DNA of 64,000 nt. Source: Takakia lepidozioides. Its lineage: Eukaryota > Plantae > Bryophyta. The stretch covers positions 80,972,001 to 81,036,000 of the forward strand of contig CM060732.1 of assembly GCA_030704615.1 (NCBI GenBank). The letters run 5' to 3'. This document shows positions 13,004 to 45,409 of the stretch, piece after piece. The position numbers and the translations under genes were made by a program. Position 1 is the stretch's first letter. Each line of letters starts with the position of its first letter. A model generated the notes under the pieces. The model was given only the letters and a program-made list of their open reading frames with translations, made no database searches and was not told the DNA's origin.

Positions 13004-16000
13004 ATGGAGCTGTGCTGTGATCCGGATGGAACGTGCATGGTGTGCTACGACATTCCTGCCGATGACCAGGTACTTGTAAAAGGTGGAATTCAGTGATATT
13101 TAAAGAATGTTGACGCCAATTCACAATGATAACGACTGGCTTGAGAAGTGCAACTTGTGGTCTTGTTATGCTGGCTAAATCCTTCCCATGAAGGACTACG
13201 TCCGTAAATGTATAAGGGTGGATAACTGATCAATTGACCTGTTACGGTTCCTGACCACAGTAGATTTTCCTTCGATATTATGCAGGTATTGATATGTGAT
13301 AGGTGCGAGAGCGCCTGGCATATTCGCTGCCTTGCACGCCCTCTTCTGAAGATTCCAGAGAACCAATGGTACTGCCCCGATTGCGCTCCTGTGCCCTCCG
13401 ATCGTCGACGGAGAGGGAGAGCTCCAAAACGGAGGTAAGTCGATCGAGCTCTATAGTTCGGTTTTTGAAGGAGGAGAATCGTTACTTCACCTTTATGGAC
13501 GTTATTACATTTTGGGGATAGAGAGAAGAGAGAAACTTATAGTGCTAAGGAGGCCCAAGCTACACTAGTAGAAAGAGAAATAAATATAACGTAGACTCAG
13601 GAAGCCCACTGGGTCAAAGAGATATAGTTGACGTTTGTGTAACGTCCAGAGAGCCCACAAAGGGTCCAATGGACGGTTGAAGGACCATTTTGAAGGATTG
13701 AACCATGATCATCATGGTAATATAAGAGAAATGAAATGAAATGGTGCTTTATAACGTCCATGGAAAGCTCATAGAGCTTATGGGACAAAATGGAAGAAAA
13801 CATGAGAGAGGAACAAATCCAGAAACCAAGAATAACAATTAATGTTCTAGCGATTGTCTAAGGGTGAAGGCCTCGTGCAGGTAGGCTGCCAAGCATTTTT
13901 GATCCTCATAGTGGAAGAGAGAGAAAGAAGAGAGAGAGAGAAAAGTATCTTGCCATAACAAAGATACCGAGTCTTGCAACCCGTAATCCTGTGGTACACT
14001 TCCTTCTGTTGCTCACATTGTCAGTACAAAACTGTCGGGGATCACAGCCATCAATAGCCTTCGGTGATGGTGGGTAGTGATTTGGGACAGGGACAATATT
14101 GGTATAATATCCCAATGCAGGATCCCAGTGGAGTCTCTTCTTTTCGAGTTTAGGTTCAAGAGTCCTGTATGGATAGATCTCAGGTCCTAGATTCTACAAA
14201 CTTATTACATGTTGGTTTCCCAAGGCATCTATATGGGCTTGGTTAAGCAGATCTATTAAATTCTGTTGTTCCTATGTTGATGGAAGCATCTCCATTTTCG
14301 TCGGTCTTTGATGTCAGGTGTGCCAATGTGATGGTTACGAAAATTCTTGCCATACAGGCTAAGAAAAGACTGTCAGAAAGGCAAAAGGCGCAACTTCGAC
14401 AGGATCTTCTTAGTGGTTTGGTCCCTGCTAAAACTGCGGCAGAGGGCCCAGTCCAAATGATGTCTGATGCTGTGGGCTCTAGGCGCCAGGGTTTCAGACA
14501 GTCTGTTAGAGGGAGGAGCCTGAAGTCAAGGCTGTCTTGCAAGACAAAGTCTGAAGAGAAGGAGCTCAGCACGCTAAGTTTCCTGAAGCAAAAATTATGC
14601 TGTGGATTCTGTCTGCAACTTCCCAAGTTGCCTGTTTCTGTAAGCTATAAAATCCCTTTTTGTCGGTTGTTGAACTGCTTCTGTTGTTCTCCTTGTCGGA
14701 TTCATGTGGCCCTTGTAGTGGGGTGGGAGATCTGTATGGTGCCCTTGGATACCCTACAAGATACTCTTATGCTGGTTTATGAACTTTTTAGAATGTTTCT
14801 GTCATTCACCTGGAAATCCCCTTCAACGGGATGGGCTAGTACACATGCCCATAGGCAGGCTAAATTATTTGTCCCTCTAAAGACATAAGCCAATGAGTAA
14901 TCAGACAGAGAAAGAGAGGGACTCATTTTTCGTTATTTTGGCAATGTTTTAGCCTTGGAGCATAGACCTTGCCACATGGAATGCCGACTGAGTAGGGTAT
15001 AGGTTTTGTCCCAAATCTTCCCTGCCTGCCTGCCTGCTGAGAGACTTGATGATGTCGGGAATGCACTCTCTCGGGTACACCAACAGAGAATAGTGATTGC
15101 AGGCACCATGTGGGCACAACTTCTGTTCCAACTGTCTCCGGAAATGGGTAAGCAACAAGAGGAACAAAACATGCGTTCAGTGCAGGGCAATCATACCCAA
15201 GTCCTCGATCAAGCAGATTCGTGTCAATTCGTCTCTTGCCAAAATTACACTGCTAGCTCAGAAGGAGCTTGATGCCAGAAGAAGCAAAGCTCGCGACATC
15301 TCCAACAGTGAGAGGCCTGACAAGGCTTTCACCTCTGAGCGCGCTGTGAGGGGGGGAAATTCAAATGCCTCTAGTGGGCGCATCTTGGTTACTACACACC
15401 CCCATCACTATGGGCCTATTACAAAGGAGTTTGATCGAGACCGAAGACGGGGTGTCTTAGTTGGAGACTCGTGGGCTAATCGACTCGAATGCCGGCAGTG
15501 GGGTACCCACCTCCCTCATGTCGCTGCATTTGCTGGGCAAGCTGGGGGAGGTTGTCAGTCAGTTGTGCTTTCAACTGGATATCCAGATGATGAGGATCAT
15601 GGAGATTGGTTTGTGTTGACTGGCAGGTTGAAAATCTGTTAACCTTTTCTTTCTGTTTTTTGTCTTCTACTTTGTCCATAGGCCCTTGGGGTCCCTCTCG
15701 ATGTTGTAAAGCTTCTCTCTCTCTCTCTCTCAGACCCTTTGGGCCTCTGGTGTACAGGATTTCTGCTTTCTTATAAAGTACCATTTCATTTCATTTCATT
15801 CATTTCCTTGATTTTTCTCTTGTTTGCATGAGCCACTCTGTCCCCAAGCTCCATTTGGGGTTCTTTCATATGCTCGTTTGGTGTTCTCTTGTTTGTTTCA
15901 TGCCCTGCGGGTCTCCCGTGGATGTACTGAAATTTCTTCTTCTTTGGTTCTCTTACATAAAAAGGTATAAAGGCATGGTTCCCGTAGTACTTTTACTGTT

Positions 16001-28824: not shown

Positions 28825-31800
28825 TTAATGAGTTGCCACATATATCCTTCTCCACTTATGGACCCTAATTGCTGCAGCTGTCATCACTCGGAAAAGGAGA
28901 CAATACATAGCTAGAACCAATATATCGATCGGGATTCGATGATGATTTAGACTGCGGTTCATCTGCAGTTGAGTCCAAACAAAGACATTATTTGCATCAT
29001 GTAACCGTGGGCAACTGCACTGTGGGCATGCACTCGGGTTATGAAGGCATGCTGTGTTTTGCCCAACGTCTAGGCACTGTGGCGTGTTCGTGTCGCAGAA
29101 GAAAGCTATGGAGGTCAGGCTGTTAAGTGCATATTGGATGGGGTTTGTCCAGAATATCCAGATGACGGTTTTTAAGATTTTTCTTTTAGGAATGACTGAG
29201 CCTCCAGTGGAAGTCCAAAAGCTGATGGTTAGAGGAATAAGAACAGCTACAATCTGCACAGGCAAAATCAGTCACCCAGTAAGTCTTTAGAGAGAATGGC
29301 TTTGTCCAACATTCCCTGCAGACATTGCCTACGATCTAACCTTGAAGACAGCCCATGCAACATATCAGCTCTCCTGGAGCCGATTGTGGGCTCTCAATAG
29401 GGAACCAGCTGCAAATTGCGGAAGTGCCCCCACACAGCTCATGACAAAGCAGCTAGAAAAAAACATGTGTTGTGGCCATCGTGCAGAAACACTCCAGCAG
29501 TGGTATCCCAGCCCCAATTTGGGCCCAGGGAAAAAATCATGAGAGAGGAAACAAAACCAGAGCCCAAAAAAAAAAAGGACTACTGCTCGAGGGATTGTCT
29601 AAGGGTCAAGGCCTCGGGCAGGTAAGCTGCCAAGCATTTCTGATCATTATAGTGGAGGGAGAAAGGAACAAGACACCCACATCAAAATGTGGCAAACATT
29701 TGCCCACAGACACAGTAGCTGGCAGACACTCTGGTCCTCAAAGCTGAGACTGGGAGTCCCTAAGACCCAATAGTATCTGCCAGGAGAATAAAGAGGACAG
29801 AGAGAGAATGTATTCATAAGACGACGTTTGCTGTAGCCTTGTGGCCATTGATCCCACGCTCAGTTTGAGCGGAACACAAAGGGACAGAAACTACCTTTGT
29901 CAGGGGCTGACACCGGTAGTATGACTTACCAAGTGCCGAGCATGCTAGACAGAGCATACAACTGCCGATATTGGGCGCAGGGGCTGCCCCCAAGCAGGAG
30001 GGGTCCGCTTGTTACCATTCAGCGATCACACTCCAGGGAGCTGCAGGGAATGGCCTGCGTAGCATATTCTAAAGAGGGAGAGGCCCCAAACTCTCCAACT
30101 AAATCCAATGCACTACCTTACCAGAGCATAGTGCTTCACGTCAAAACAAACAAAGACATGAAATGGTGCTTTATAACGTCCGCGGAAAGCTCATAGAGTG
30201 AGAGAAGAGAGAGAGAGAGAGAGAGATAGTTTGACTCATTGATTGTCCCCTTTGGTAAGCCGTGACATACCCTCTCAGGACCAATCAGGGGGTCACAAAC
30301 CCACCCGACGGCAGGGAGTGACAAACAGAAGGACAGTAAGCCAGAAAAATGTAGAGGAAGGTAAATCATTTACCTGTGGCGAAGGACTAATAGCTGCAAT
30401 AAATATGCCAAGAAATGTGATGGCCAGAGAAAATTCAAATAGGACAAAATAGAAGCGAAAGAAGTCAGCTGCCGAGTGTACAGCCATTTGAGCCATGAGG
30501 CAAAAGACGAAACAGAATATCATAGTCGCTAACGCCAGATATGGAACCTGTTGGGAAGACACAGGGGGATCCAGTTAGTAGAAGTATGGTGTGAAGCAAA
30601 TTGTACATTTCTACTTCACACAAGAGAGAAGAGGAAGAAAAATTAAGTAAATTCAACATGACCACCTGTAGCACGAAGGCCTAGCATTCACTGATTGTTC
30701 AATGCAGGGGATGACATACTCTACTGGGCCTTTGTGACAGTTCTAATGATGCAGGGTATGCAGCTTTAGAAGACGTCAATGAAGAAGAAATAGAAACTGT
30801 ATTATGTCAACAGGAGCCAGAGGACCATGGGGCACTGTAGAACAGCAGAAACCAAAGAACAAATGAAATCCCATATATGACACACAGTTCAGGCTTTTCG
30901 CTATGGAGTTTAATTATCCTTTAAGATAGTTTTAGAAGATTGGCCTTCTGCCTGATTTTGAGCCTTTGGTCCCTTCCATTGTCTTTGGGACCTCATACAT
31001 TTTCTATATCTTGCCTGCCCATTGAGCCTTCTTACCTGGCCAAATATTTCAGCTGTCCTGACCAGTGTTGGGTGGAAATTTGGTTTCTGTCATATCCTCC
31101 GGTTCCGGTTTTTTCAAGTTTTGGAAAACTAAGAACCTCAGTTCCGGATACTAGCAAGATTTATGTCAAGATATATCCTTTGTATCGAGATACTAGCAAA
31201 CACCTCAAATAACCGGTGGATCTCATCAAATGTCTGGCGGTTTTTCATGGATCTTTGAAGTGATATTTGATCAGATATTTCTTTGAAATTTTGAGAACTG
31301 CCGGTTAAATGGCAATATATCCTGCAGAGATTAGGTCCCAAATCAAAGATCCTCCCAACACTGGTCCTGACGTGTGAGACTTCCCAATAAATTGTGATCC
31401 AGGGTGCTGCACCTTCCCTCAGACGAAATGAAATGGTAGTTTACAACATCCACGGAAAGGTTCATAGTGGGTGCAGCACTGGGACTTCCGGGAGGTAACC
31501 CATCCCACCCAGTACTATTCCGGCCCAAAGGCGTTTGACTTCAGAGGTCTGGTGTAGTGGCCTTGGTATGACCACACCACAAAAAATGATATGGTAAGAG
31601 GAGGGAGCAATTACCTCAGCAAATGTCCATGCCAAGTTGTAGAATAGAACGTTGTACTGGTTTGTGGACTGCTCTCTTTCCAAGGTCGCTTTTTGTAATA
31701 GGATGCTGGGTACAACACTTTGTGCATTGGTAATTCCCAGTAGGACACACACAATAAATAGACTTTGAGATTTCACAGTCATGCCCACTGTTGTGTGTAT

Positions 31801-34800
31801 ATTGACGTTGAAATAGACAGAGCCCAGTATCAAACCCAGAGCTAGTGAGGATGTCATTCTGGAAAAGCTATAACCCACGTTCCGCCAATAAAATCGCTGC
31901 ATTTTTATGAAGATTTCGTACGCCATCAATGAGTAAGGAGCTCGATAACCTGCTTCTGTCAGCTCTGGTCCATTTTGTCCCTTGGACCGGCGGAGGTGCT
32001 GGAGTTGCACATGATTGTGGAGGGCCAATTCGCTCACTCGATACTCAAAGGCATAGTCTCTCAGGGCCTTGCGGTCAGTGATGCCGTCACCAATGACATC
32101 GATGGCATAGGATGTGGGGCTTTTATTTGGTGGGCACAGAGGGGTGCCAGGGATTGCCTCGAAATATTTCTGTGACATGAATAACACCCAGCAAATGGCC
32201 TCTAATCACATCTTCACAACGAGTGACAAAATGTTGAGATTTTACCATTACCATGACTCTCAAGAGCAACACTTATATTATGCAATTTCCTGTGAAAGGT
32301 CAACATCAGCATGCAACTGTTACATCTCAATCTCTCACTGAGTCTTCCATTATGAGGATCAGAAATGCTTGTCAGCTTACCTGCACGAGGCCTTGACCCT
32401 TAGGCAATCCCATGAGCAGTTTGGGCTGCTTTTTGGCTTGGGTTTTGTCTCCTCTCTCTTATTTTTTCCATTTTGTCCCATAAGCTATTGAGCTTTCCGT
32501 GGACGTTATAAAGTACCATTTCGTTTCATTTCCTTCTCCTCCCACTCTTGCTCAATTTCCACATAAAATAAAGGACCAATACTTTATTAGAGGAAGGCCA
32601 GGATCAGGACCCATTGATGAAGGGAGCTTGCTGTAGTGGCCAACATCCCCATAATCGCTTCACACCCTCCCCCTTACCCACTCCATCATGTGGTTTACTG
32701 CCATGATGGTGCCCAATGAGTAACTTTCACTTCCTGTCTTCATCAGAGCTTGAAGTTGGCTTTCCCAAACTACCAAAGCGGGGGAGGGTCCGGAAGGCGT
32801 TGACTCAATAATGGGGTTTAAGGAAGGCTTTCGGACAAACTTATTGCATATCCAAATGTTCAACAGCATTGTAAGACTGTAACATTCCCTCTTCACTCTG
32901 ATCATTTGAAGACAACAACCCTTCAGGAGCTGTATGAGGCAGAGTTTCTACTACCGGGGTATAAAACTCATCCCCAACCTCATCCACAGTAGAAGTGAGA
33001 GAAAACCAAAAGAAATAAGGAAAAGAGTAGTTACCTGGACAAGCTCTGCATTTATTCCAGATTGACCAAAGTAGACGGTTTCACCCCCTCGCTTGAGGAT
33101 GAGGAGGCTATTGAAGGCTACCAGCTGCCGCAGACTGGGCTGCCGAAGTGTGGTGATCACCACCCTACCCGTGTCAGCTATGTGCTGCACTCAAAACACC
33201 CCCATTAACATGAATACCAACCCTGACTCTAATTCAAAGATGCAGGCCACTTGAGCTGTTGGGATGAGGAAAACCCAGAGATTCCATTCAACCCAGGATT
33301 TCACTCCATCTAATTAAGAGACTTCATCATGTGGCAATAAAAATAAGAGCAGGACCCTTAGGAGAGAGATACTACCTTGAGACATCGAATAATATGGCTG
33401 GAGGCATGGCTGTCAAGTCCTTTCGTGGGCTCATCCAGAAACATGATACTCGGGTTGCCTGCCAGCTCTGTAGCTATTGCCAGCCGCATAGCTTGCTCTT
33501 GCGTTACCTCATCTTCCCGTAGGGATAGTAGCAACTTATCTGAAAGATGTTTGATTTCCACTAGCTGCAAAACCTGCATCATCCAAACTCGAAGTCTGAC
33601 AAAAAGTTATGCAGTAGAAAATGCAATCATACTCTCATGCTTTCCCACATAAATGGCCTTGACTTGTAGGAAGTGAACCCAATGAAATATGACCCCAGCT
33701 CTGTGGGATGCCAAATGAGTATAAAATGTCATAGTTCCCATAATGATGTCCACTTGAAACAGCTGTTACAAATCAACAGAGGATTTTAAAGGAGGAGATG
33801 AACATACCTCCTCAACAAACTCTTGACGTTTTTGGATGGGAGACTTTTTGCCTAGCCGCATGGCAGCACTAAATGTGATGGCCTCTTGTACGGTCATGTG
33901 TGGAGCATATGAATGAAGATCATCGACATAACCAATTGCATTTGCATATGTCTTTTGTATCTTCGGATATCCATTGACCAAAATTTGTCCCCCAATGCGC
34001 CCCAGAGACACTTTCCGGCCTGTTGACAGGCAAGGCAACAGACGAACAAGTATCTATAAGACTTCAATGGGATAACGAAATGGGTGACAGATTATACATA
34101 TCAATAGATTGCCCGAGTACAGTACTTGATAACTCATTGAGCCTGGTTACGCCTTAAAGAAGGAAGTGTTTTTATCAGATCCACTCGAAACCCAATGATG
34201 TTGTGGTGTAAGAGAAAGTTCTGAAGCCAGAACATCCAAATTTCTAAGCTATGACAGTACCTTGATTTCATGGAGACAAAGTGCAATGGGCACGTATGCG
34301 TCGGGCATTTCTTGTCTTCATGACTGGAGGACAGAAACAAGAGAAGAAGCAATACTACCTGCACTGATGGGGTCTCTGGGACAAGAACAAGTTCCCACAA
34401 GATTCGCAACACTACAGAGTCAGGAATTTCTTGCCTAAAACTGCTTGGGGACAGATAGCCTCGTGCTCTTAGCGAAAGAAGGGAAGTGCGGAAGATGGGA
34501 TGATTGAAACAGGAGAGGTAATGTGTTATAATACCTGCAAGGCAATTAAGCAATGTTGTTTTGCCAGCCCCATCACAACCAAGCAGACCAACCATCTCGC
34601 CAGGCTCTGCCCATCCCGAGACAAAGTTGAGAATCGTACGGGTTTGCCCAATGGTGGGGATCAAAATGTCGTAGCTCAGCTCATGCCAGGATAGTGTGAG
34701 AGGCTCTGCTGTATGTGAAAGCTTTCGCTCTGCACGCCCCCACTCTTCATCTTTCTGGTGGTTCAGCCCCTCTGAGTGAAGCTTCACCTAGAAATCATTG

Positions 34801-37800
34801 CAACAACATACTTCAGCAGGAGATATTGTTTTCTGTTGGTTTGTCTGGATATTTCCGACGAAGTGAGTAACTGCACTCCTTTGGAATCCAGGACAACTTC
34901 AAAATCATAACCACCAAGTATGAATTCCCTAATGAGCCCACTCATCTACGTAACTCAAATAGGCAGAATGAGGAGGAAGATGTAACCTCCATGGGGGGAC
35001 TCAGTTTCCGCTTGGGTAAATGCCGAAGCCTTGCCAGAGACAAGTATGCCCCAATGTTGAACAGTATAAACCAGCCAATCAGTACCATGACAGCAATCCC
35101 AATCCAGTGATTGCTTGTATAAAATTGACCTTTTGCCAAGAAGGCATGGCCAACTGTGTTTTGTGGCCGTCCAACACATTGTGGAATACTTGCCAGATTG
35201 GGGACCTGGCTGCAGAGCATGCTGTAGCTTTTTGAATTGAATTCGTTGATCACAAGAGCAGTTATGCCCCATTGCAAAGGATCCAAGTAGTATGCCCAAA
35301 TCCAATAGTGTGGTACCTTGAAGCGGGGTACCAAGAAACCAGCAAATAGGATGAATATTGCCACCAATATCCCTGTAGGACAAGGGGGGTTGTTAATAAG
35401 CACAAAATGCTCTAATTGAGTACACCAATTGACTGGTGCTTATTGCATTGCAAATGATGGCTTGTTTGTTGCAACCAATCCTAAGCTAATCCGACCAGAT
35501 TGGTTACTAGGAATGATTAAATAGTAGACCTTGCCACCGTATTTTGTTCTTCCTCCACTAGCCTCCTATCTTCAACTCCTCGGCAGAATAAGGGAATCAG
35601 GTGAAAGAAAGAATGTTACCAATGATGCCGTTTGCCACTTCACGATCAGAGGCAAAGGCACTCATAAACCGCACTAATGATGCTCCATTCAAATCAGTCA
35701 AAATGGCAACAACATAGTACACCCAAAAATGCCAACCTCCATCGGTGAGACTGAGGCCTGTCATAAAGTACACTATAAGAGACCATGTGGTTGCCTGCAA
35801 ACAACAGCAGAGTCCAAGACATGGTAGCCTTGTTAGAATTCCTCAGTGGTCACATGTTTAGGCATGGGGATGGTTCAAAGACACATTGGAAAACATCATC
35901 TTCATCATCTTTCAGCACCCTTATCTCCTTCCCTCTTGAGGGCATTGGGGCGGTTCAGCGTGGGTTCCCACAACCTACGGATAGAGACTGGCAGATGGGA
36001 AAACCTGCAACGGGAGGACCGCCTATGTCCAGCTTGCATAGGGCGCAGCAAGGAAATTGAAACTGAAGAACACTTCTTCTTCTACTGCCCTCTATACTAC
36101 GAGATCCGTGGGAGATTCCACTGTTTATTCAGTGGAACCCAAACTCTCACTGATGTCTTTCACTATGAGGATAAAAAATGCTTGGCAGCCTACCTACACG
36201 AGGCCTTCACCCTTAGACAATCGCTAGAACATTAATTGTGGTTTCTGGATTTGTTCCTCTCTCATGTTTTCTTCCATTTTGTCCCATAAGCTCTACGAGC
36301 TTTCCGCGGACGTTATAAAGCACCATTTCATTTCATTGTCAAATTGTCGAAGCATGCAAGTCTTGTCAAAGATACTAAAGCTGAAGTAATACTTTCTGTT
36401 GGGGAAAGAAGGATGCATTACATTATCGACAAACCCACCCTCTCTCTTCAAGGGTCAATAGTAAAGTAAAGAGCTCAAGAAAAAATAGTGCCAATCACTG
36501 TAACTGCAGTGGAGAAAGCAATGAAATCAATGTACAAGGTAACTACAGCCACAGAGATCACCGTCAATGGGTAATCTAGGAAAACCAATCATTGCTTGTT
36601 TACAGCTGCAAGGGTAGCTTTCTTCAATGATTAAGAAGATCAATCAAGCATTGCAGCACCAGAAGGAACATAAAACAACAAAAGGAATAAGAGCAAAACC
36701 TCCATAATTGTGAAGGGAAGACCCCCAAAAATCTTAGCCAGTAGGTAAGACTGAGGGCGGAAAAACCGTGCGTTCTGTTGTTTGTAATAGACAGCCCGTT
36801 CCTCCATAAGAGTGGGTAATTGCCCCAAATTGATAAGGGTCAAATTCATAAGGGAGACAAAGAAGACACCTCGTAGTAAATTCATGTCCAGTTGGTTTGG
36901 GTCGTTTTGGACTCGGAAAAACACCACACCTGTGAAGATACTCAGTATAAGGATCTGCAACCAACATTTCAAACAACGAAAAGTTGGTCATTAGTAGAGA
37001 AGACACTGCTCCTAATGTCCATATCAATCCACTATATTCCTGCCTATGCTCCGTTTCCTTTTTCCGTGGTTCTTTGTTGTTCTCCATGTGCCTCTTGAGC
37101 TGTTTGGAGCTCCTGCCGATGTAATAACAAATTTCTTTCTCTTTTTCCGTGGACATTGTAAAGTACCATTTCATTTCATTTCTCTGTGGACATGATCAAG
37201 TTTCTTTGAAGTCTTCCACTATGAGGATCAGAAATGTTTGGTAGCCTACCTGCACGAGGCATTCACCCTTAGACAATCACTCGAACAATAGTTCTTTTCT
37301 GACTCTGGTTTTCCTATTTTCTCTCATGTTCTTCCTTCCATTTTGTCCCATAAGCTCTATGATCTTTCCGCGGACTTTATAAAGCACCATTTCATTTCAT
37401 TTCATTTGAGCTTTCCACGGAAACTCCATTTCTTGAGCTTCCGCAGATGTTATGCCGCATCATTTCATTTCTTTACTGGCAGCATGTCTACATGAGGCTC
37501 TACACCTGAGAGGATGCCTCGAAGTTGACTCCTAGTTTTTGGGCTGCCTATTGGGCCTACTTTTTCTTGCTTTCATCTCATTTCATTTCTTGCATGAAGC
37601 TCTCCAAATTAGAGAATCTCTCGATATTAAATAGTTGTTTTCGGGCTGCTTGTAGAAAGCCGCACTATCTTTCTTATAAAGCACCATTTCATTTCATTTC
37701 ATTTCTTGTTTCCTTCTTTTTTTTGGCCCTCTTTGAGCTTCCTGTGGACTTCCATTATGAAATGACGTTATGTAGTGTCATTCCAATTCATTTCTTTCTG

Positions 37801-40800
37801 CCCACTACCTTTCGGCGCCTCTATCTCCTTCCCTCCCTCTCTCCCATAAGCTCTATGAGCTTTTCGCGGACGTTATAAAGCACCATTTCATTTCATTTCT
37901 CTTGTTTTTTCCATTTTGTCCCATAAGCTCTTTGAGCTTTCCACGGACGTTATAAAGTACCATTTCGTTTCATTTCATTTCATTTCTGCTTGCTGTGGGC
38001 GCCACTCTCTTGTTTGTTTCTTGCTCTCTCTTTCCCTTGAGCAAGTGGGTTACCAACTTTGAAGGTCTCGAGGCTGAGCCAAAAGCTCATGCCCTTTTGG
38101 GGCCTAGTTATTGGGCAAACCACACACAGCAGATTGATGCTTGTGTGAAGGGATTCTAGGGGATATCTGGAAAACTCTTATTTGTTGTCTGTTCCAAGGT
38201 AAGTCATACTACCAGCGTCAGTCCCTGACAAAGATAGTTTCTGTCTTTTTGTGTTCCACTCAAACTGAGCGCCGGGAAGGCTACAGCAAACGACGTCTTA
38301 TGAGTACATTCTTTCCCTTGAGCAAATGTTGCTTTAGGGCTGCTCGTGGAGGGCCCCTCTCCCGTTATAAAGTACCATTTCATTTCTCTTTCTTGTGTCT
38401 TGACAAGAACCATTCAAGACGTAGGAAGGACAAGGACAAGGACCATAGCAAGCTCCCCATGAGATGGAAGTTACCCAAAACTAATCCAAAACAAAAACAG
38501 GGGACTTCAGCCATAAGGCTAGAGGAAGCAAACTCCAATGAGTCCCTTTTGTGCTCCCAGTGGCTGTTACAAATTCTACGTCTCACTTTCATGACAAAAA
38601 GGCTATTGCAAAAATGCCTGGTCATCTCTCTTTAGAAGAGAAGTTTTTGGCAGCTTCACTGCTAAAGGAACCCCCTCTGTTAAGTTACCAGTTGCTATAA
38701 AGGGGTGAAAAACAAACAAACAAAGAATGTACTCATAAGACTTTGTTTGCCATAGCCTTGTGGCCATAGACCCCATGACAAACAAAGAGTGAATGAGAAA
38801 GAGGAACTTTACCACATCTGCAGGAAGCTTATGGGGCAAAGGAAAAATAAAGAAGACATAAAAGTAGGCCCCCCCAACAACCAGCCACCACAAGCATCCA
38901 ACTACAATTCAAATTCGAGAGATTATCTAAGGTGGAGAGCCTCCTGTCGATAGGCCACAAGACATGTCTGATCCTCATAATGGAACAGTTCAGTCAGGGA
39001 GTAGCTGTCTGTTGAAAAGTTAAAAAAGTAGCCCTGGACTTGAGAATGGGGAACCTACCTGTGTCATGCGGAGTGCGAGGCTTAGTTTGTTGCGCCACAT
39101 AACACGTATTTCCCTCTTAAGCAAAAGAAGAAACTCCGGTTTGAGGTCCAAGATATAGTTCCTCTCAAACTGGCGACCATGAGTGCCCACCACCTGTAAA
39201 CATCCCCATCCACAATTTGAATATATCTTATTTTCCATGCAAGACAATGATATTAGGTGCATTTAAAGCCTCACCTCATTTGGAAGCTTCATAGTCATTT
39301 ATTACCTGTTCTCTATCTCCGGTTTCATAACCTGTCTGGGCTCTCTGTAGATGTTTCTATCTCCTTTTTTCACGATCAAAACAAGCTGCTGGAGTGCACT
39401 CCAGCTAAGGCTAGAATCTGTCCTCTTTGTACGACCCAGGAAATAGAGACAGAGTCCATTGCCTTCTCCTGTCCGGCATACTATAAGATCCAAAGATGAT
39501 ACCATACCCAATCTCTGGTAGAAGCTTTCAGCTTTTGAGGACCTGAAGTGCCTGGCAGTGATGGGGCACTTTGCCTTCAGGCATCATCTCATATTTTGCA
39601 AAGTGGTTTCTAGTTGTTCTACTTTGTCCCCGGGCCCTCAGGCCCTCAGGTCCCACTGTGGACAGTATATGATTTTTGTATCCTTCCCTTGCTCAAATCC
39701 ACTCACAATAGACCCACTATACACAGCCCCAGAGGAAACATAACCAATATTTACCTCTCTAAAGGGTCGCTCTAATTGCAGGCGCACTGGCTCTGCCACT
39801 TGCTCAATGGCCATTGCAAGTCCGCCCGTGAGCGATCTATCCAAGGCTCTGTCATTGGTGTTGAAATACTTCAGCATTTCACCAGCTCCTCCCACTGCCA
39901 CAACTTCATCTCCAGGAGCTACCCCCGTTGTTTGGTCCATAGAGACTTCAGCAAGGCTGCCCCCTTTCTCTACCACTGCAGCCACAAGTGTGGATATTTT
40001 CTTTGCTATTCCATTCCCGTTGTTTGGTCGGCTTTCAGTAAACCCAAGCCCCAACGGTCTGTTTCCCTGTGAATTCATGGCAGGTCAAGCTGCAAACCAA
40101 AATGAAGAAAAACCTATTCACACACATCCCCTGCATATCTGTGCTATTCTCACACTGTGCTCAATACAACTGTCTCTTCAGAGATGGTTCACATCTGGCA
40201 GAGGCATTTAGTCCCTTGGTTTGATGCAAAGATGGAGGGGTTCAACCAAGGGTGGAAGTCACTACCTGTACCCAGAGCTCCTGAACAAGGTCGACGTTGT
40301 TGACAACTCTGCGAATGTCCCGGAAGGTGGGAGACAGAAGATAGCTGGCCACAAAGTCTTCATGCACAAGTTGGGGATATCCAGGCTGCAGAAATCGGCT
40401 ACCCCCAGGTGTTGTCACCTCCGCCAGAAACTCACTGACAGTCAAATGCCTGGGCTTCACGTACCTGAAACATATGCAGGACACATGACATAAGTTTCAG
40501 AACCCGAAAATTGAGATGTGTTTTGAATGGAATACACTTTTACGAGAAGTGGCTATATCCATTGCCTACCCGAGACTTTCGAAATAAGGAAGGGCATCCT
40601 GACGAGGGCCCTGGAACATAACTTGGCCTCCATCCAGCAGAATAAGGCGATCAAAAAGCTCAAAAACCTCAGGAGAAGGCTCCACCAGTGATGCCATTAC
40701 TGCAGTTTGCCGAACCCGACTAAAGATTCGAACACTGGACACCAGATCGAAGGTCGCTGCATCCTCCACCCCTGTGTGCAAATTGCAGAAGTTTAGCAGG

Positions 40801-43800
40801 GGAGACAGCTAGACACAGGGTGTCAGAAAACCAAACCCCAGAAATCCAACAGAAATGAAATGAAATTATAACAACAGAGAAAGGAGAAGGGAAAAGAAAG
40901 ATTGAGGGCAAAGGAAGAAGTTCAAGATAAATATGACTTGTCAAACACTCATCACCATGTAACACAGCTACAGTACTTTGAAGTACACAATTAATAAGCG
41001 AAATAAGTTTACACAGGCATTTGAACTAATTATAGGCAATGTAGATAAACCCATATACCAAGAACGTTCCACATACATTCACACTGGATCTGTAGCTAGG
41101 ATGTATGTAACTTGATCTGTCAACAAGAGCCACTATGACTTCCTTACTGCCATGTGTGTGGGCTGCAGAATCTTGACAATTTTGTTAGGGAAAGTTGATT
41201 TTGATCAAGGATTAGTGGCAATTGCAACGCTGGCAGCTTATTCTGCGCAAATATAGGGATCTACTGCTGAGATCTATATACCTAGATGTAAATGCATAGA
41301 GATAAACTACATATTGACACATTATCACAGTCTTAAAGTATGTTACATATGTGGTGCACTGTGGGAGGAGAATTCACCAGTGTTGAGCTGATCAAAAAGA
41401 TAGACAGCATAGGTGCCCGCAATCATCTCAGCAGTGGTCAACCGATGCCGCTCATCCTCCGTCAGTGAGGGCCTCATTGGGCTACCAACCGGCCGGCCAG
41501 CAACTTTCTTCAAACCCATCATACTTATAGTCAATTCCAGTTTTGGGTCTTGGCCAAACTTGAGGGCCTCGCCCATGACCTCTTGCAACTCCTGGCCTAA
41601 GTCTTTTGCGGTCAAGGCTTGTGAACATTCACGAGCAAATTCAAGTGTTTCCCGCACTGTAAGAGGGGCTAGGTGTACATCCCGTGGGTCCACTACAGCT
41701 GCCAGACGGTTGATCAAAATGTCATGCACCTTGTTCCCGTTATAAGTCACAGTACCGTCAAGGTGGCTGCCTGGAGGAACCTGCATGCCTGCTATCACTT
41801 TGTGTAGAGTGCTTTTGCCACATCCTGGGGGCCCTGAAAATCATGTTGAATGACAACGGGAGTTAATCTCAACTTTAATTTGGGCACTGGTCAATAAAAG
41901 AAGGTAAGTCTAAACAAATTACTGTAATCTGCAACAATAAGTCTACTTTCTGTTCAATTAGTGTCAGTACTGTAGCTTGCCCTCTCATACAATTACTCAT
42001 CCTCAGATTAAAACAGACTTCCTCAGTCTGTCTTTGTGTTCCCTTCCCATAAGCTACTAGGCTTCCTGTGGGTGTACACACACCACACACCAGGTCAGAA
42101 GCCATTCTAATTTGTTTTGGAGACAGTTTAGGTCACAGGCCGTTCACAATCCCTGTGGACATAGTAATCTAATTGAAAGTTCCTTTCTTTCTTGCTCCGA
42201 GATGATAGAATCTTGAGAGCAAATTACCTTTCAGCATCCTTATCTCCTTCCCTCCTGAGGGCATTGGGGCGGTTCAGGGTGGGTTCCCACAACTACGGAT
42301 AGAGACTGGAAGATGGGAAAACCTGCAACGAGAGGACCGCCTATGTCCAGCTTGCATGGGGCAGAAACTGAAGAACATTCTCCTACTGCCCTCTATACTA
42401 CGAGATCCGTGGGAGATTCCACTGTCTATTCAGTGGAACCCAATCTCTCACGAAGTCTTCCACTATGAGGATCAGAAATGCTTGGCAGCTTACCTGCACG
42501 AGGCCTTCACCCTTAGACAATCACTAGACATGAGTTCTTATTCTTGGGTTCTGGTTTTGTTTCCTCTCTCATGTTCTTTTCTTCCATTCTGTCCCATAAG
42601 CTCTATGAGCTTTCCAGGGACGTTATAAAGCACCATTTCACTTCATTTCATTTCTTGCTTTCCTTCTCATTTCAACTGATGAAGTAGACCAGAAGAGATT
42701 TATCACTTCATAGGAAGCCCACAGGACCGAATGTGATTTCTAAAATCAAACTGGGGTTGGTGCAGGTAGGCGCCAACCTGCTGGTTGCTTTTTAGTCTGT
42801 CCAGTTTCAAAGTTTTTACGGCTTGTTTAGTTTCTTTGTTGTGGTTTGCTCGCATAATTCTTTGGTTCTATGCCCTTCCTGGGTTCCTTGATGTTTCTTG
42901 TGTATCTTCTAGTTCAACAGGCCTGTGACAGTGGTCTGTACTTGTTTGTTTCATGTTACTGGCAGGGGTTTCCCTCTTCCACCTCTTTATAAAGGGGGTA
43001 ATTGCATTTACAAAAACGAAAAACAAACTGGTGCACCATCCAAACTGGGCATAGGGTCTAAGCCTGAAAGAAATTACCTACTACAAGGGTAAGGGTACCG
43101 GGCATGAGGTACCCAGACACGTCTTTCAACAGAATTGCATCCTGCAGAGTCGGCTTCGCCAGCGGACGTTTGATCAGCCCCATCAGCTGGCAATTTCCCC
43201 TCCCATGCCCCATGTGAGTGGTCGAATGCACAAAGGCAAAAGAGTTGTGCAGATGTAGTGATAGAACCCAAGAATAGACATTGATTGCTTCCCTGTGAAA
43301 ATTTGCCTATCATGAAGCCCAGGTCCCTATATTGCTCGCCCACACTAGTGACAGCCAGTCTGCTGGCATTCAGTGAGTGTTCATTTGATGCTGACAGCAG
43401 GGCCATATTCGAAAGAATTCGGCACTGCTTAGTAGGCCCCTACCTCCAGAGCCTACCAACCACAGAATCTTAGATGCAGTTGTGCTTGAATTGCCACTGA
43501 CCCTGTTGTATGAGGGAGAGCTGGAGGTAAAGAGCAGAAGGACAGACAGAGGTATTAACTAGACTTGGCCTCACTGTAGCCTTGTAGCCTTGTGACAATA
43601 CTTCCCGTCAGGTGTGCAAGCAGGCAAAGTGAAGGGACTACCCTTCGGGATCGCACATCGGAGAATACAACAGAAGGAGGCAACATACTAACTGGAAATT
43701 CAGCCTAGTCCCAGACAGATTGAACTATAAAGGAACTCACCTTAGTGTACATGGTTTCATAGCCAGTATCCGCTGTCACCTTGGATGAGTACGTTATTCC

Positions 43801-45409
43801 CTTGAACCTGACTACCTGCAAACACAGAAGGTAACAGAGACCTAAACCTTGTAGAAAGCTTTTCTGGGGTTTTAGCCCATCGGAGTTCAGGCCACAGTGG
43901 CCGTAATGCTCATGCACAACGATATCTATTTGTTACAGGGAAGTACCGTTGAATTAAGAGCTGGCATTGAATCGCCACGGGGAGCTCAAGAGGGTTATGG
44001 GACAAGAGGAAGAAATGAAATGAAAGGATACTTTATAACAAGAAAGACAGAGGGGCCACAAGCAGCCCAAAAGCAACTATTGCGCAAGGGATTTTCAAAG
44101 ACCCAACACTTCATGCAGGTAAGCTGCCAAGCATTTCTGACCATCATAATGGAACGTGGGGGAGGAGAGACAGAGCAGATAGAAATGAAATGAAATGGTA
44201 CTTTCCTCTGGGAATTTCCTATGGCCACTGGAGGCCCCAAGGGTCCAAGGGGCAAGAGTAGAACAGCAAAGAACCACTGACAAGCAAACTGTGGAGCCAC
44301 AGCATATACACAGTAGAGAGAGGATGATGTTTACTGGCACCAACCTGGCTGGGTATGGGAGGTAAATACGGGGTCACCATCAGCAAATACTTCAACAGCC
44401 CGTCCTTCAGAAGCAAGTCCATGCCTTGCAGCTCCCGTGCCATCTCTGCAAATTCAATGCCATCCTGCAACTCGCGGATCACGCTAGCAATTTTCTCGGC
44501 TTCTTTTTCAAGTCCATGATTCAGTAGAACCTGGTGATACAGGCCAACTACATGTATGAGTGATGCCTGGGGGGCTTCAGCCAAACAAGAGTAAAGCTCT
44601 CTTGACATATCCATGGTTGTCTCTTCCTCAACTGCGGCGGCAGCTGGGGATCTATGCCCAAAGGTTTTCAAATGCAAGCCTTCCTCAGACCGCTCCAAAG
44701 AATGATTATTGTCCCCATCCCTTTCATATTCACCTGCATTCAGTGGACAGACAACCAACAAGGTTGACAGTAATTGCCATAAGGCAACAGTGGTACTTTA
44801 CAGTCTCCAGCACGAAAACAATATTCGAAAGCAGATTACAAGAACACTTGATGAGGAGAGAGGATTCCTCGTACCTGTTCTGTAGTGAACAGCACTTGGT
44901 GTGGTAGCGTCTGTCCCTTCAGAGCTGTCCTGTGATCGCCTGCTTGATGCTCCAGGATAGCCCGTCGAGCGGACTCGACCTCCATTTCTTCTCAAGCATT
45001 GGAGACTAAGACTGCGATCTTTCCATTGGTCTAAGCCTTCCTGAAATAGACTTTCAGCACCAGTGAATACCACCTCTGGAGCTTCTCCTTGAATACTGCC
45101 ATGCATCACTGGCTGCACTCGGGAAGGACCGGATCGTCCCCTGCGCAACATTGGCTCGACATTCTCAGCCGGGGTAATGCCAAGCTCCCTGCCAAGTGTG
45201 TTTCCGCGACCGAGCTCCTGTCGTCGACCCGCCTGTTGCTGGCCAATTGGCCGCCTCACATCAGGGACAGTGTGGTGTACGCTTCTCACCTCCTCGGCTG
45301 CCTCGCTCGCCGGCACATCTGAGGCCTCGCTTTCTGCCGACGTGCTTTGATCCTCTGGAGTACGGTGACGACTCACATGCCGAATTGAGTCCCGGCGAGA
45401 ACCTTCCAT
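28825..45409 (-). CDS. Full-size ABCG (PDR-type) transporter-like protein, NBD1-(PDZ-like)-TMD1-NBD2-TMD2, ~1732 aa, 19 exons
   Basis: Phase-consistent GT-AG exons on -: 45409-44875, 44733-44345, 43815-43741, 43186-43078, 41833-41378, 40771-40570, 40464-40266, 40066-39755, 39193-39059, 36954-36700, 35794-35620, 35372-34987, 34787-34535, 34019-33808, 33573-33376, 33184-33035, 32169-31615, 30547-30374, 29253-28825. Motifs: Walker A GPPGCGKST and GCDGAGKTT; NPSIMFLDEPTKGLD; LKRGGETVYFG; YFEAIPG; ERAVYYKQ; YWIWAYYLDPLQW..INEF. Confidence 0.93.
29540..29656 (-). mobile_element. LINE 3' fragment in ABCG last intron
   Basis: gattgtctaagggtcaaggcctcg..caggtaagctgccaagcatttctgatc..atagtgga matches the family in reverse complement. 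Confidence 0.8.
30160..30199 (-). mobile_element. Very short LINE 3' end next to a (GA)n tract
   Basis: gaaatggtgctttataacgtccgcggaaagctcatagag. Confidence 0.8.
31063..31363. mobile_element. hAT-type MITE (301 bp) in an ABCG intron
   Basis: TIRs CAGTGTTGGGTGGA / TCCTCCCAACACTG (13/14 match); perfect 8-bp TSD GTCCTGAC at 31055-31062 and 31364-31371. Confidence 0.92.
31425..31466 (-). mobile_element. Short degenerate LINE 3' end
   Basis: gaaatgaaatggtagtttacaacatccacggaaagg. Confidence 0.65.
32327..32532 (+). mobile_element. 5'-truncated LINE copy in an ABCG intron
   Basis: gtcttccattatgaggatcagaaatgcttg..ttataaagtaccatttcgtttcatttc. Confidence 0.88.
35830..36337 (+). mobile_element. Longest LINE copy (RTE-X-like ORF2 C-terminus with CCHC motif, 3' UTR and ATTTC tail)
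   Basis: LGRFSVGSHNLRIETGRW..REDRLCPAC..ETEEHFFFYCPLYYEIR is the typical post-RT zinc motif of non-LTR retrotransposons; the tail is ccatttcatttcatt. Confidence 0.88.
37090..38386 (+). mobile_element. Cluster of ~8 head-to-tail LINE 3' ends in one ABCG intron
   Basis: Tails or 3' UTR cores at ~37182, 37407, 37472, 37704, 37750, 37899, 37986 and 38386, all on +. Confidence 0.85.
38905..39600. mobile_element. Two older degenerate LINE fragments (38905-38985 on -, 39305-39600 on +) on either side of ABCG exon 9
   Basis: ARICPLCTTQEIETESIAFSCPAYYKI resembles the family CCHC motif; gattatctaagg..ctgatcctcataatggaa. Confidence 0.65.
42229..42654 (+). mobile_element. 5'-truncated LINE copy in ABCG intron 4
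   Basis: Highly similar to 35910-36337, with small indels. Confidence 0.9.
43994..44202 (-). mobile_element. LINE 3'-end fragments in ABCG intron 2
   Basis: gaaatgaaatgaaaggatactttataa..caggtaagctgccaagcatttctgaccatcataatggaa, plus a second tail gaaatgaaatgaaatggtacttt. Confidence 0.8.

Follow-up and report, generated by a model that had tools for sequence, protein, structure and literature searches.

The window analyzed here, a 64,000-nucleotide (nt) stretch of contig CM060732.1 of Takakia lepidozioides (Bryophyta; GenBank assembly GCA_030704615.1, positions 80,972,001 to 81,036,000 of the forward strand), contains a minus-strand gene that, as read from its translated exons, is of the full-size ABCG/PDR transporter type, with a nucleotide-binding domain (NBD) followed by a transmembrane domain (TMD) twice over, in reverse topology. 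One exon of this gene, together with the last five codons of the exon before it, is predicted to encode a conserved cytosolic domain of ~105-110 residues between NBD1 and the elbow helix of TMD1. The insert is read here as a strongly diverged PDZ-like beta-sandwich, with a probability of about 0.6, and the combination gives a known transporter family a new domain architecture. In the proposed order of elements, strand A (ELWVQ) leads into an x-Phi-G-Phi loop (PLGL) and strand B; after a variable loop rich in Gly and Asn come strand C and a short helix carrying an SMDxT insert peculiar to the family, then a hairpin that starts with GD (strands D and E), and finally the long helix B and strand F (RLQLER). 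Coordinates are positions in the window unless another locus is named, and those of the main features are collected in Table 1.

The domain exon is real, spliced in and expressed. It is 312 nt long and stop-free, and its 104 residues (GNRPLGLGF to LQLERPFRE by translation) cover most of the inserted domain, from putative strand B to strand F, including the PLGLGF loop, an SMDQT segment, GDEVVAVGG and a helix leading into VRLQLERP. The preceding exon ends in ELWVQ (40280-40266), a candidate for the first strand of the domain, and the following exon opens with VVGTHG. The preceding, domain and following exons all read in frame 1, in frame from their first base, so that the domain exon is of phase 0-0. 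A contig from a public run (X1, record 2; 5,274 nt, k-mer depth 117) was placed on the window and covers 39059-39191, 39753-40065, 40265-40461, 40567-40770 and 41377-41835. At its four joints, the introns read CT..AC on the plus strand in 4 of 4 cases, i.e., GT..AG on the gene strand; the intron limits 39194-39754 and 40067-40265 were taken after the cut shifts stated for the contig joints. The contig was taken as a transcript because four canonical introns had been removed, the RNA nature of the runs themselves being a guess. A second public run, X2, yielded one contig inside the domain exon (39890-40048). For the segment 38900-41900, two public runs contain the exonic part and none of the introns, and the sampled-word shares of the segment in the two runs were 0.40 and 0.13, the first of which is close to its exonic fraction. 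No exon-skipping contig was seen in two public runs, in contig data that may miss a minor isoform. A 312-bp phase 0-0 exon at 40066-39755, with junctions at 40266-40066 and 39755-39193, had been proposed in an earlier reading made from the letters of the window alone (the sequence-only reading), in which skipping of the exon in transcripts was named as an outcome that would speak against it. Translation of the exon and of both neighbors agreed with the proposed exon, both junctions were matched exactly by the X1 contig with GT..AG introns, and the domain exon was present in the sole spliced contig seen.

Relatives of the domain were collected in searches made with single exons or with P0001 and P0053, two Sphagnum proteins that span the exon junction without interruption. 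With the domain exon as HMMER query, 1.84 billion cluster representatives gave 18 matches, 14 of them exon-sized plant open reading frames (ORFs) with 41-74% identity; the other four (P0012, P0013, P0014 and P0016) are repetitive bacterial or WD40 proteins and were rejected as spurious. Profile searches of a 5.8-billion set returned 42 and 29 exon-sized plant ORFs, on which no Pfam domain or meaningful name was found, and the inserted domain was found in ~50 exon-sized ORFs or small clusters in all. One of these clusters includes NCBI CAM6009576.1, an "unnamed protein product [Sphagnum balticum]" of 698 amino acids (P0053) that spans the N-terminal extension, NBD1 and the inserted domain. A homologue from a Logan assembly, P0007, was left out of the alignments for its many apparent C-to-T-type substitutions; read by eye, its S/P/A/T/H sites appear as F/L/V/I/Y, and it was possibly assembled from bisulfite-converted reads.

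In all domain-bearing loci that were fetched (L001-L007, L011 and L012), the domain lies between NBD and ABC2_membrane exons. Clade A comprises the window, the Sphagnum type, L011 and L012, while clade B comprises L005-L007; identity between the clades is 30-36% in the domain and 40-50% in the ABC core. When divergent members were used to seed a second profile search, no lineage other than these two clades came up. Loci of clade A and clade B occur on different large contigs of one ENA assembly (ERZ25073694), so the clades are paralogous and the insert is older than their split. Between the window and L001, a Sphagnum-type locus, identity is 69.7% in the domain exon, 64-72% in the NBD1 and TMD exons and 39-45% in the N-terminal extension; the domain is as well conserved as the NBD and TMD exons. 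In the first alignment, M43 and Y67 are invariant and T46, D53, V56, G59, G60, L96, Q97, L98 and R100 nearly so, and ELW[VL][QE] is conserved in both clades. Introns were compared over positions 10001-10540 of L001, 40067-40265 of the window and ~9600-10000 of L005 and L006. The upstream intron is missing in L001, where the preceding and domain exons form one ORF, ...LLEELWVEGNQPLGLGF... (P0001), and the domain is therefore not an artefact of the exon structure of the window. In clade B (L005 and L006), the domain is split elsewhere, after the PLGL strand; since intron positions around the domain vary between relatives, the domain is not a fixed shuffled exon. From the labels of its members, the family appears to be bryophyte, at least moss, where the moss label rests on a single NCBI label (Sphagnum balticum); some of the JGI (Joint Genome Institute) samples are presumably peat-moss metagenomes. 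The finding of only ~50 small clusters in a collection expected to be rich in angiosperms suggests that the domain is likely missing from flowering plants.

When Pfam was run on the exon ORFs, ABC_tran, ABC2_membrane (four times) and PDR_assoc were found at ~28.8-45.4 kb on the same strand and in the right order, and the exon ORFs are collinear with the homologous loci L001 and L005 (tblastn). The order along the gene is N-terminal extension, NBD1, inserted domain, TMD1 with PDR_assoc, NBD2, and TMD2 with a Cys-rich outer loop; outside 39059-41835, the exons and the outer limits of the gene are placed by homology only. Between the SEFLAEVT motif that follows NBD1 and the start of TMD1 (LLLLKREIRVMWRN, at the position of the elbow helix in ABCGs) there are ~170 residues; in canonical plant PDRs the corresponding distance is ~75 residues. 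Solved ABCG structures have a short linker only between NBD1 and TMD1, and alignments of Sphagnum P0053 with Cdr1, Pdr5, ABCG25, ABCG1, ABCG2, ABCG5 and ABCG8 end just before the insert, which is thus a true insertion relative to every solved ABCG. Pfam order, collinearity and structure alignments therefore all agree with the earlier placement of the domain between NBD1 and TMD1 of a full-size ABCG.

The motifs that had been listed as a PDZ signature (PLGLGF, GVAPGDEVVAVGG and VRLQLERP) are present, and only the second Gly of GLGF did not hold: relatives have K, T, D, E or Q there. Loop variants in the family are PLGLGF, PLGVTF, PLGVDF, LGLKF, LGLEF and LGLQF, and L005 and L006 of clade B have EELWLEAKKPLGL[QK]I at the loop, in a small separate exon. 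The unit conserved in both clades is ELW-x-[EQ]...[KR]-P-L-G-[LV]-x-[FI], a match at the level of sequence only. The candidate x-Phi-G-Phi loop is P-L-G-[LV], preceded by a basic residue, and the GLGF of the window is in part a coincidence. Further along, GVAPGDEVVAVGG is the segment that matches the PDZ motif G-x-x-x-GD-x-I, and in alignments to PDZ domains a conserved insert of 6-7 residues (SMDxT) lies ahead of the GD motif.

Among the weak matches in structure and sequence, no fold other than PDZ recurs. In a phmmer search of the PDB, 7 of the 8 matches were PDZ constructs of the Aquifex site-2 protease (E 0.28-0.54). Profile searches of the PDB placed the PDLIM2 PDZ domain at the top (E 0.07) and also returned that of LIMK2, with PDZ matches at E 0.07-1.2; in the PDLIM2 alignment, the last strand, PLRLQLDR, is paired with RLQLER of the domain. 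In a language-model feature search, the top named cluster scored 0.92, and the ten best family-bearing matches all (10/10) belonged to the PDZ clan. Foldseek against the PDB gave PDZ domains in all of the best 50 rows (50/50), each individually insignificant at E 0.7-5.5. VIA-align, which was run without Foldseek on 48,161 representative chains, gave ~45 PDZ domains among the best 50 rows (Z 2.6-4.0), with model residues 61-127 on helix A to strand F, i.e., in the C-terminal half only. In an ESM Atlas shape search, 6 of 10 rows carried a PDZ (Tsp/S41, M50 and a eukaryotic PDZ; template modeling (TM) score ~0.3), and one clade-B exon ORF carries the JGI pipeline label "C-terminal processing protease CtpA/Prc". 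The secondary-structure order in the AlphaFold2 models, which are of low confidence, is E-E-(h)-E-E-H-E, and order and spacing fit PDZ.

Several results weigh against a PDZ fold. The Pfam models PF00595, PF13180 and PF17820 gave no match at E<=10 to the domain exon or to any of 42 members, Pfam found no PDZ on the neighboring exons and five homologues, and NCBIfam gave chance matches only on ten members. For the window exon with 14 sequences, AlphaFold2 returned a mean predicted local distance difference test score (pLDDT) of 46.4, and for residues 20-146 of Sphagnum P0001, which include the ELWVE strand, a mean of 54.5 with 42 sequences; the predicted TM score (pTM) was ~0.3 in both cases. 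The N-terminal halves were unmodeled in both models, and in that of P0001 only the C-terminal half reached a pLDDT of 66-72. The VIA-align scores (Z<=4.0) compare with a stated noise of Z 7-8 for that tool, and a language-model feature search with the partial clade-B exon gave no PDZ signal. Taken singly, no fold match is significant, and the AlphaFold2 and ESM lines are not fully independent and may respond to the same motifs that were noticed in the sequence-only reading. The PDZ fold proposed in that reading agrees with the recurrent weak matches, with the positions of the motifs and with the order of elements in the AlphaFold2 models; no PDZ profile matched, and both models are of low confidence.

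One further line was rejected as evidence. The family alignment was compared by hhalign with eight PDZ domains of E. coli K-12 DegP, DegQ, DegS, RseP and Prc, with boundaries set by Pfam, and scored 27.4 (P 3e-4), with 200 column shuffles at or below 16.3. As a control, an alignment of the HtrA protease domain scored 28.7 on the same query columns, and in whole-protein runs the DegP, DegQ and DegS matches fell in the protease domain, not in the PDZ. The test is unspecific, because its signal is that of a generic "strand, loop, GD-x-V-x-A-x-G" hairpin. The same holds within the best-conserved segment, GVAPGDEVVAVGG, which has weak matches to site-2 protease and Prc PDZ domains and an equally good one to the HtrA protease-domain hairpin. 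Against E. coli Prc, the window exon and P0077 gave BLASTP E values of 0.07 or worse.

These results bear on a first alternative, that the insert, a conserved globular domain, has another or a new small beta-rich fold (e.g., a barrel fragment or a TrkA_C-like regulatory domain), whose likeness to PDZ would be due to the common GD-x-V-x-A-x-G hairpin and a final amphipathic strand. The hairpin control, the low model confidence and the identity of the weak Pfam matches among family members (Kelch_6 in 4 members and TrkA_C in 3 members, not PDZ) speak for it. Against it, no non-PDZ fold was consistently ranked, PDZ filling 45-50 of the best 50 rows with two aligners, and the predicted elements fit PDZ in number, order and spacing, as does the x-Phi-G-Phi loop in its position. 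A different fold is judged unlikely on balance, while being the strongest of the competing explanations. A second alternative, that the segment is a conserved linker with no independent fold that packs against NBD1 or the elbow helix only in the context of the full protein, would agree with a pLDDT below 50 over most of the N-terminal half, with the Gly/Asn-rich variable loop between putative strands B and C, and with the invariant outward-facing residues of RLQLER, which suggest an intramolecular interface. A linker is nonetheless very unlikely, since ~100 residues with a regular alternation of hydrophobic strands and two predicted helices are more than a linker needs, and since they are conserved as strongly as the NBD and TMD exons. 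Almost no weight can be given to a dispensable cassette or a lineage-specific exonization without function, for although the phase 0-0 symmetry means that skipping keeps the frame, and the contig data are compatible with a minor skipped isoform, the exon is in the sole spliced contig seen (depth 117), is conserved with invariant residues in two paralogous clades and many taxa, and is flanked by introns whose positions differ between relatives (L001; L005 and L006). A strongly diverged PDZ-like beta-sandwich is thus the preferred reading.

The ATPase motifs differ between the clades. In NBD1 of the window, Walker A is intact (GPPGCGKS, read across a splice), the signature position reads SLTEDERHR, and Walker B reads AVYLFD followed by Q in place of the catalytic E; the clade-B readings are GPPGCGKS, VSGGERHR and FLDE, respectively. 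In NBD2 of the window, Walker A and the Walker B D-E are intact. There, Walker A reads GCDGAGKT in the window and GSSGAGKT in clade B; Walker B reads IMFLDEPT in the window, FLDL, FVDD or FLDE in other clade-A loci and FLDEPTSG in clade B; and the H-loop reads TTLRQPS in the window (His to Arg), has His replaced by Gln in L001, L011 and L012, and reads CTIHQPS in clade B. Clade A, including the window, has therefore lost the NBD2 H-loop His and is variable at the NBD2 Walker B Glu (E, L, D, E), while Walker A, Walker B, signature and H-loop are all canonical in clade B (L005 and L006). By these motif readings, the degeneration is specific to clade A, for which the degenerate NBDs noted earlier were recovered in both NBDs. 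Because clade B is canonical and yet bears the domain, the domain arose in a competent-looking protein and predates the degeneration, and it is not explained as part of a "pseudo-transporter" package.

As to function, a PDZ-like module anchored after NBD1 would lie at the interface between NBD1 and the membrane, where its ligand might be a strand or peptide supplied by a partner protein or by the N-terminal extension of the same transporter; such binding would couple the NBD-TMD machinery to the partner and so regulate or localize the ABCG core. A regulatory or docking role, in a position like that of the regulatory domains behind the NBDs of ABC importers, is proposed tentatively, at somewhat less than even odds. 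In RLQLER, the Q and R that face outward are invariant, which hints at a fixed contact surface on the strand F/A face; NBD1 or the elbow helix is a plausible counterpart. Quite unlikely is a stronger version, in which these would be moss ABCG-derived membrane proteins with a genuine peptide-binding PDZ domain that serve, the clade-A ATP sites having decayed, as a scaffold, a receptor or an ATP-binding switch and not as a pump. The scaffold or receptor role put forward in the sequence-only reading is weakened by clade B, in which the same domain occurs with fully canonical ATPase motifs. The C-terminal tails were considered as self-binding PDZ ligands and set aside as unlikely: they differ between loci (YVATH, RMQTK and KYDVR), have non-hydrophobic ends unlike PDZ ligands and lie close behind the last transmembrane helix.

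Table 1. Position of the gene, of the inserted domain and of neighboring features in the window.
Feature	Position	Strand	Basis or remark
Whole full-size ABCG/PDR-type gene	28825..45409	-	~19 exons by homology
NBD1 exon	41377..41835	-	Walker A read across splice: LVVGPPGCGKS
Last NBD1 exon	40567..40770	-	SLVEPSPEVFELFD ... YFESLG
Preceding exon	40266..40463	-	helical stretch after NBD1; translation; joint 40065/40265
Intron upstream of domain exon	40067..40265	-	199 nt; skipped in X1 contig; missing in Sphagnum-type orthologue
Domain exon	39755..40066	-	translation; spliced contig with GT..AG junctions; ~50 homologous ORFs
PLGLGF, candidate carboxylate-binding loop	40040..40057	-	alignments A1 and A2
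GVAPGDEVVAVGG, best-conserved core segment	39887..39925	-	D53, V56, G59 and G60 nearly invariant
VRLQLERP, putative last strand	39764..39787	-	Q97 and L98 invariant in A2; L96 and R100 nearly so
Intron downstream of domain exon	39194..39754	-	561 nt; skipped in X1 contig; GT..AG on gene strand
Following exon	39059..39193	-	short linker, then TMD1 start LLLLKREIRVMWRN; translation; joint 39191/39753; collinear with L001
NBD2 exons	32993..34760	-	motif readings and homology

Two other features of the gene were recorded. The last outer loop of TMD2 is Cys-rich, with 7-8 Cys in ~35 residues (e.g., CDTNTPQC...ACLHNPSACPQCSCP); it lies at 28825-29265 (minus strand) in the window, at 16441-16929 in L001 and at 18381-18734 in L005, and is conserved in both clades; a Cys-rich outer loop had been noted earlier for the window gene. 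A repeat family of ~10 copies or fragments with 76-96% identity lies mostly inside introns of the ABCG gene (35846-36470, 13730-13918, 29529-29654, 30150-30198, 32328-32530, 37144-37974 and 42228-42647), where the copies help account for intron length. The longest copies contain an ORF with a CPxC...ETxEH...CP motif, which we take to resemble the zinc-knuckle tail of the reverse transcriptases of non-LTR (long terminal repeat) retrotransposons; Pfam gave no match on the repeated intronic ORFs.

The main plant exporters of defense compounds, hormones and cuticle precursors are full-size ABCGs, a group whose domain plan is considered fixed. With a conserved extra domain between NBD1 and TMD1, such a protein would have a regulatory or docking handle built in at the place where ATP binding reaches the membrane domain. 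The two clades, both with the domain, one canonical and one degenerate, offer a natural comparison that could show how a transporter becomes a non-pumping membrane protein. Should the fold prove to be PDZ, the family would add to a very short list of land-plant PDZ-type modules outside proteases. The literature search found no paper that pairs PDZ with a full-size ABCG, or relevantly with ABCG and moss; within the literature searched, the earlier statement that no PDR with a built-in PDZ domain is known therefore stands. Early-diverged, "V1-type" full-size ABCGs occur in Chara, Klebsormidium, Physcomitrella, Sphagnum, Selaginella and Amborella, and no extra domain is mentioned for them (PMC8359288). 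The V1 type may include the domain-bearing family, the lead being the overlap in taxa (Sphagnum) only.

Compared with plant full-size ABCG/PDR transporters such as Arabidopsis ABCG36/PEN3 and Nicotiana PDR1, the window gene has the same NBD-TMD-NBD-TMD order, ABC2_membrane and PDR_assoc domains and PDR-type NBD motifs, but it has ~100 extra residues before the TMD1 elbow helix and a longer N-terminus, and clade A has degenerate ATPase motifs in both NBDs. The closest solved full-size ABCGs are Pdr5 and Cdr1, to whose NBD1 P0053 aligns in the case of Cdr1 (E 1e-20); one degenerate ATP site in these transporters is a precedent for asymmetric degenerate sites, and a fungal linker of ~85 residues takes the place of the inserted domain. 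The insert resembles PDZ domains (those of Prc/CtpA, RseP and HtrA, and of NHERF1, PDLIM2 and PSD-95) in size, in the predicted order of elements, in an x-Phi-G-Phi loop after a basic residue, in a GD-led strand D and in an amphipathic last strand, and differs from them in lacking a profile-level match, in the SMDxT insert, in the second Gly of GLGF, which is not conserved, and in lying within the polypeptide of a transporter. For CFTR, MRP2 and other such ABC proteins, the PDZ domain belongs to a separate scaffold and the ABC protein is its ligand; if the built-in PDZ proves true, this would be an ABC protein that carries the PDZ domain itself and does not serve as the ligand of a separate scaffold. 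In prokaryotic ABC importers (MalK, MetN and ModC), regulatory domains that bind small molecules follow the NBD. By analogy only, the insert is similar to these in being an accessory beta-rich domain directly after an NBD that could gate NBD closure; the importer domains have different folds, and no homology is claimed.

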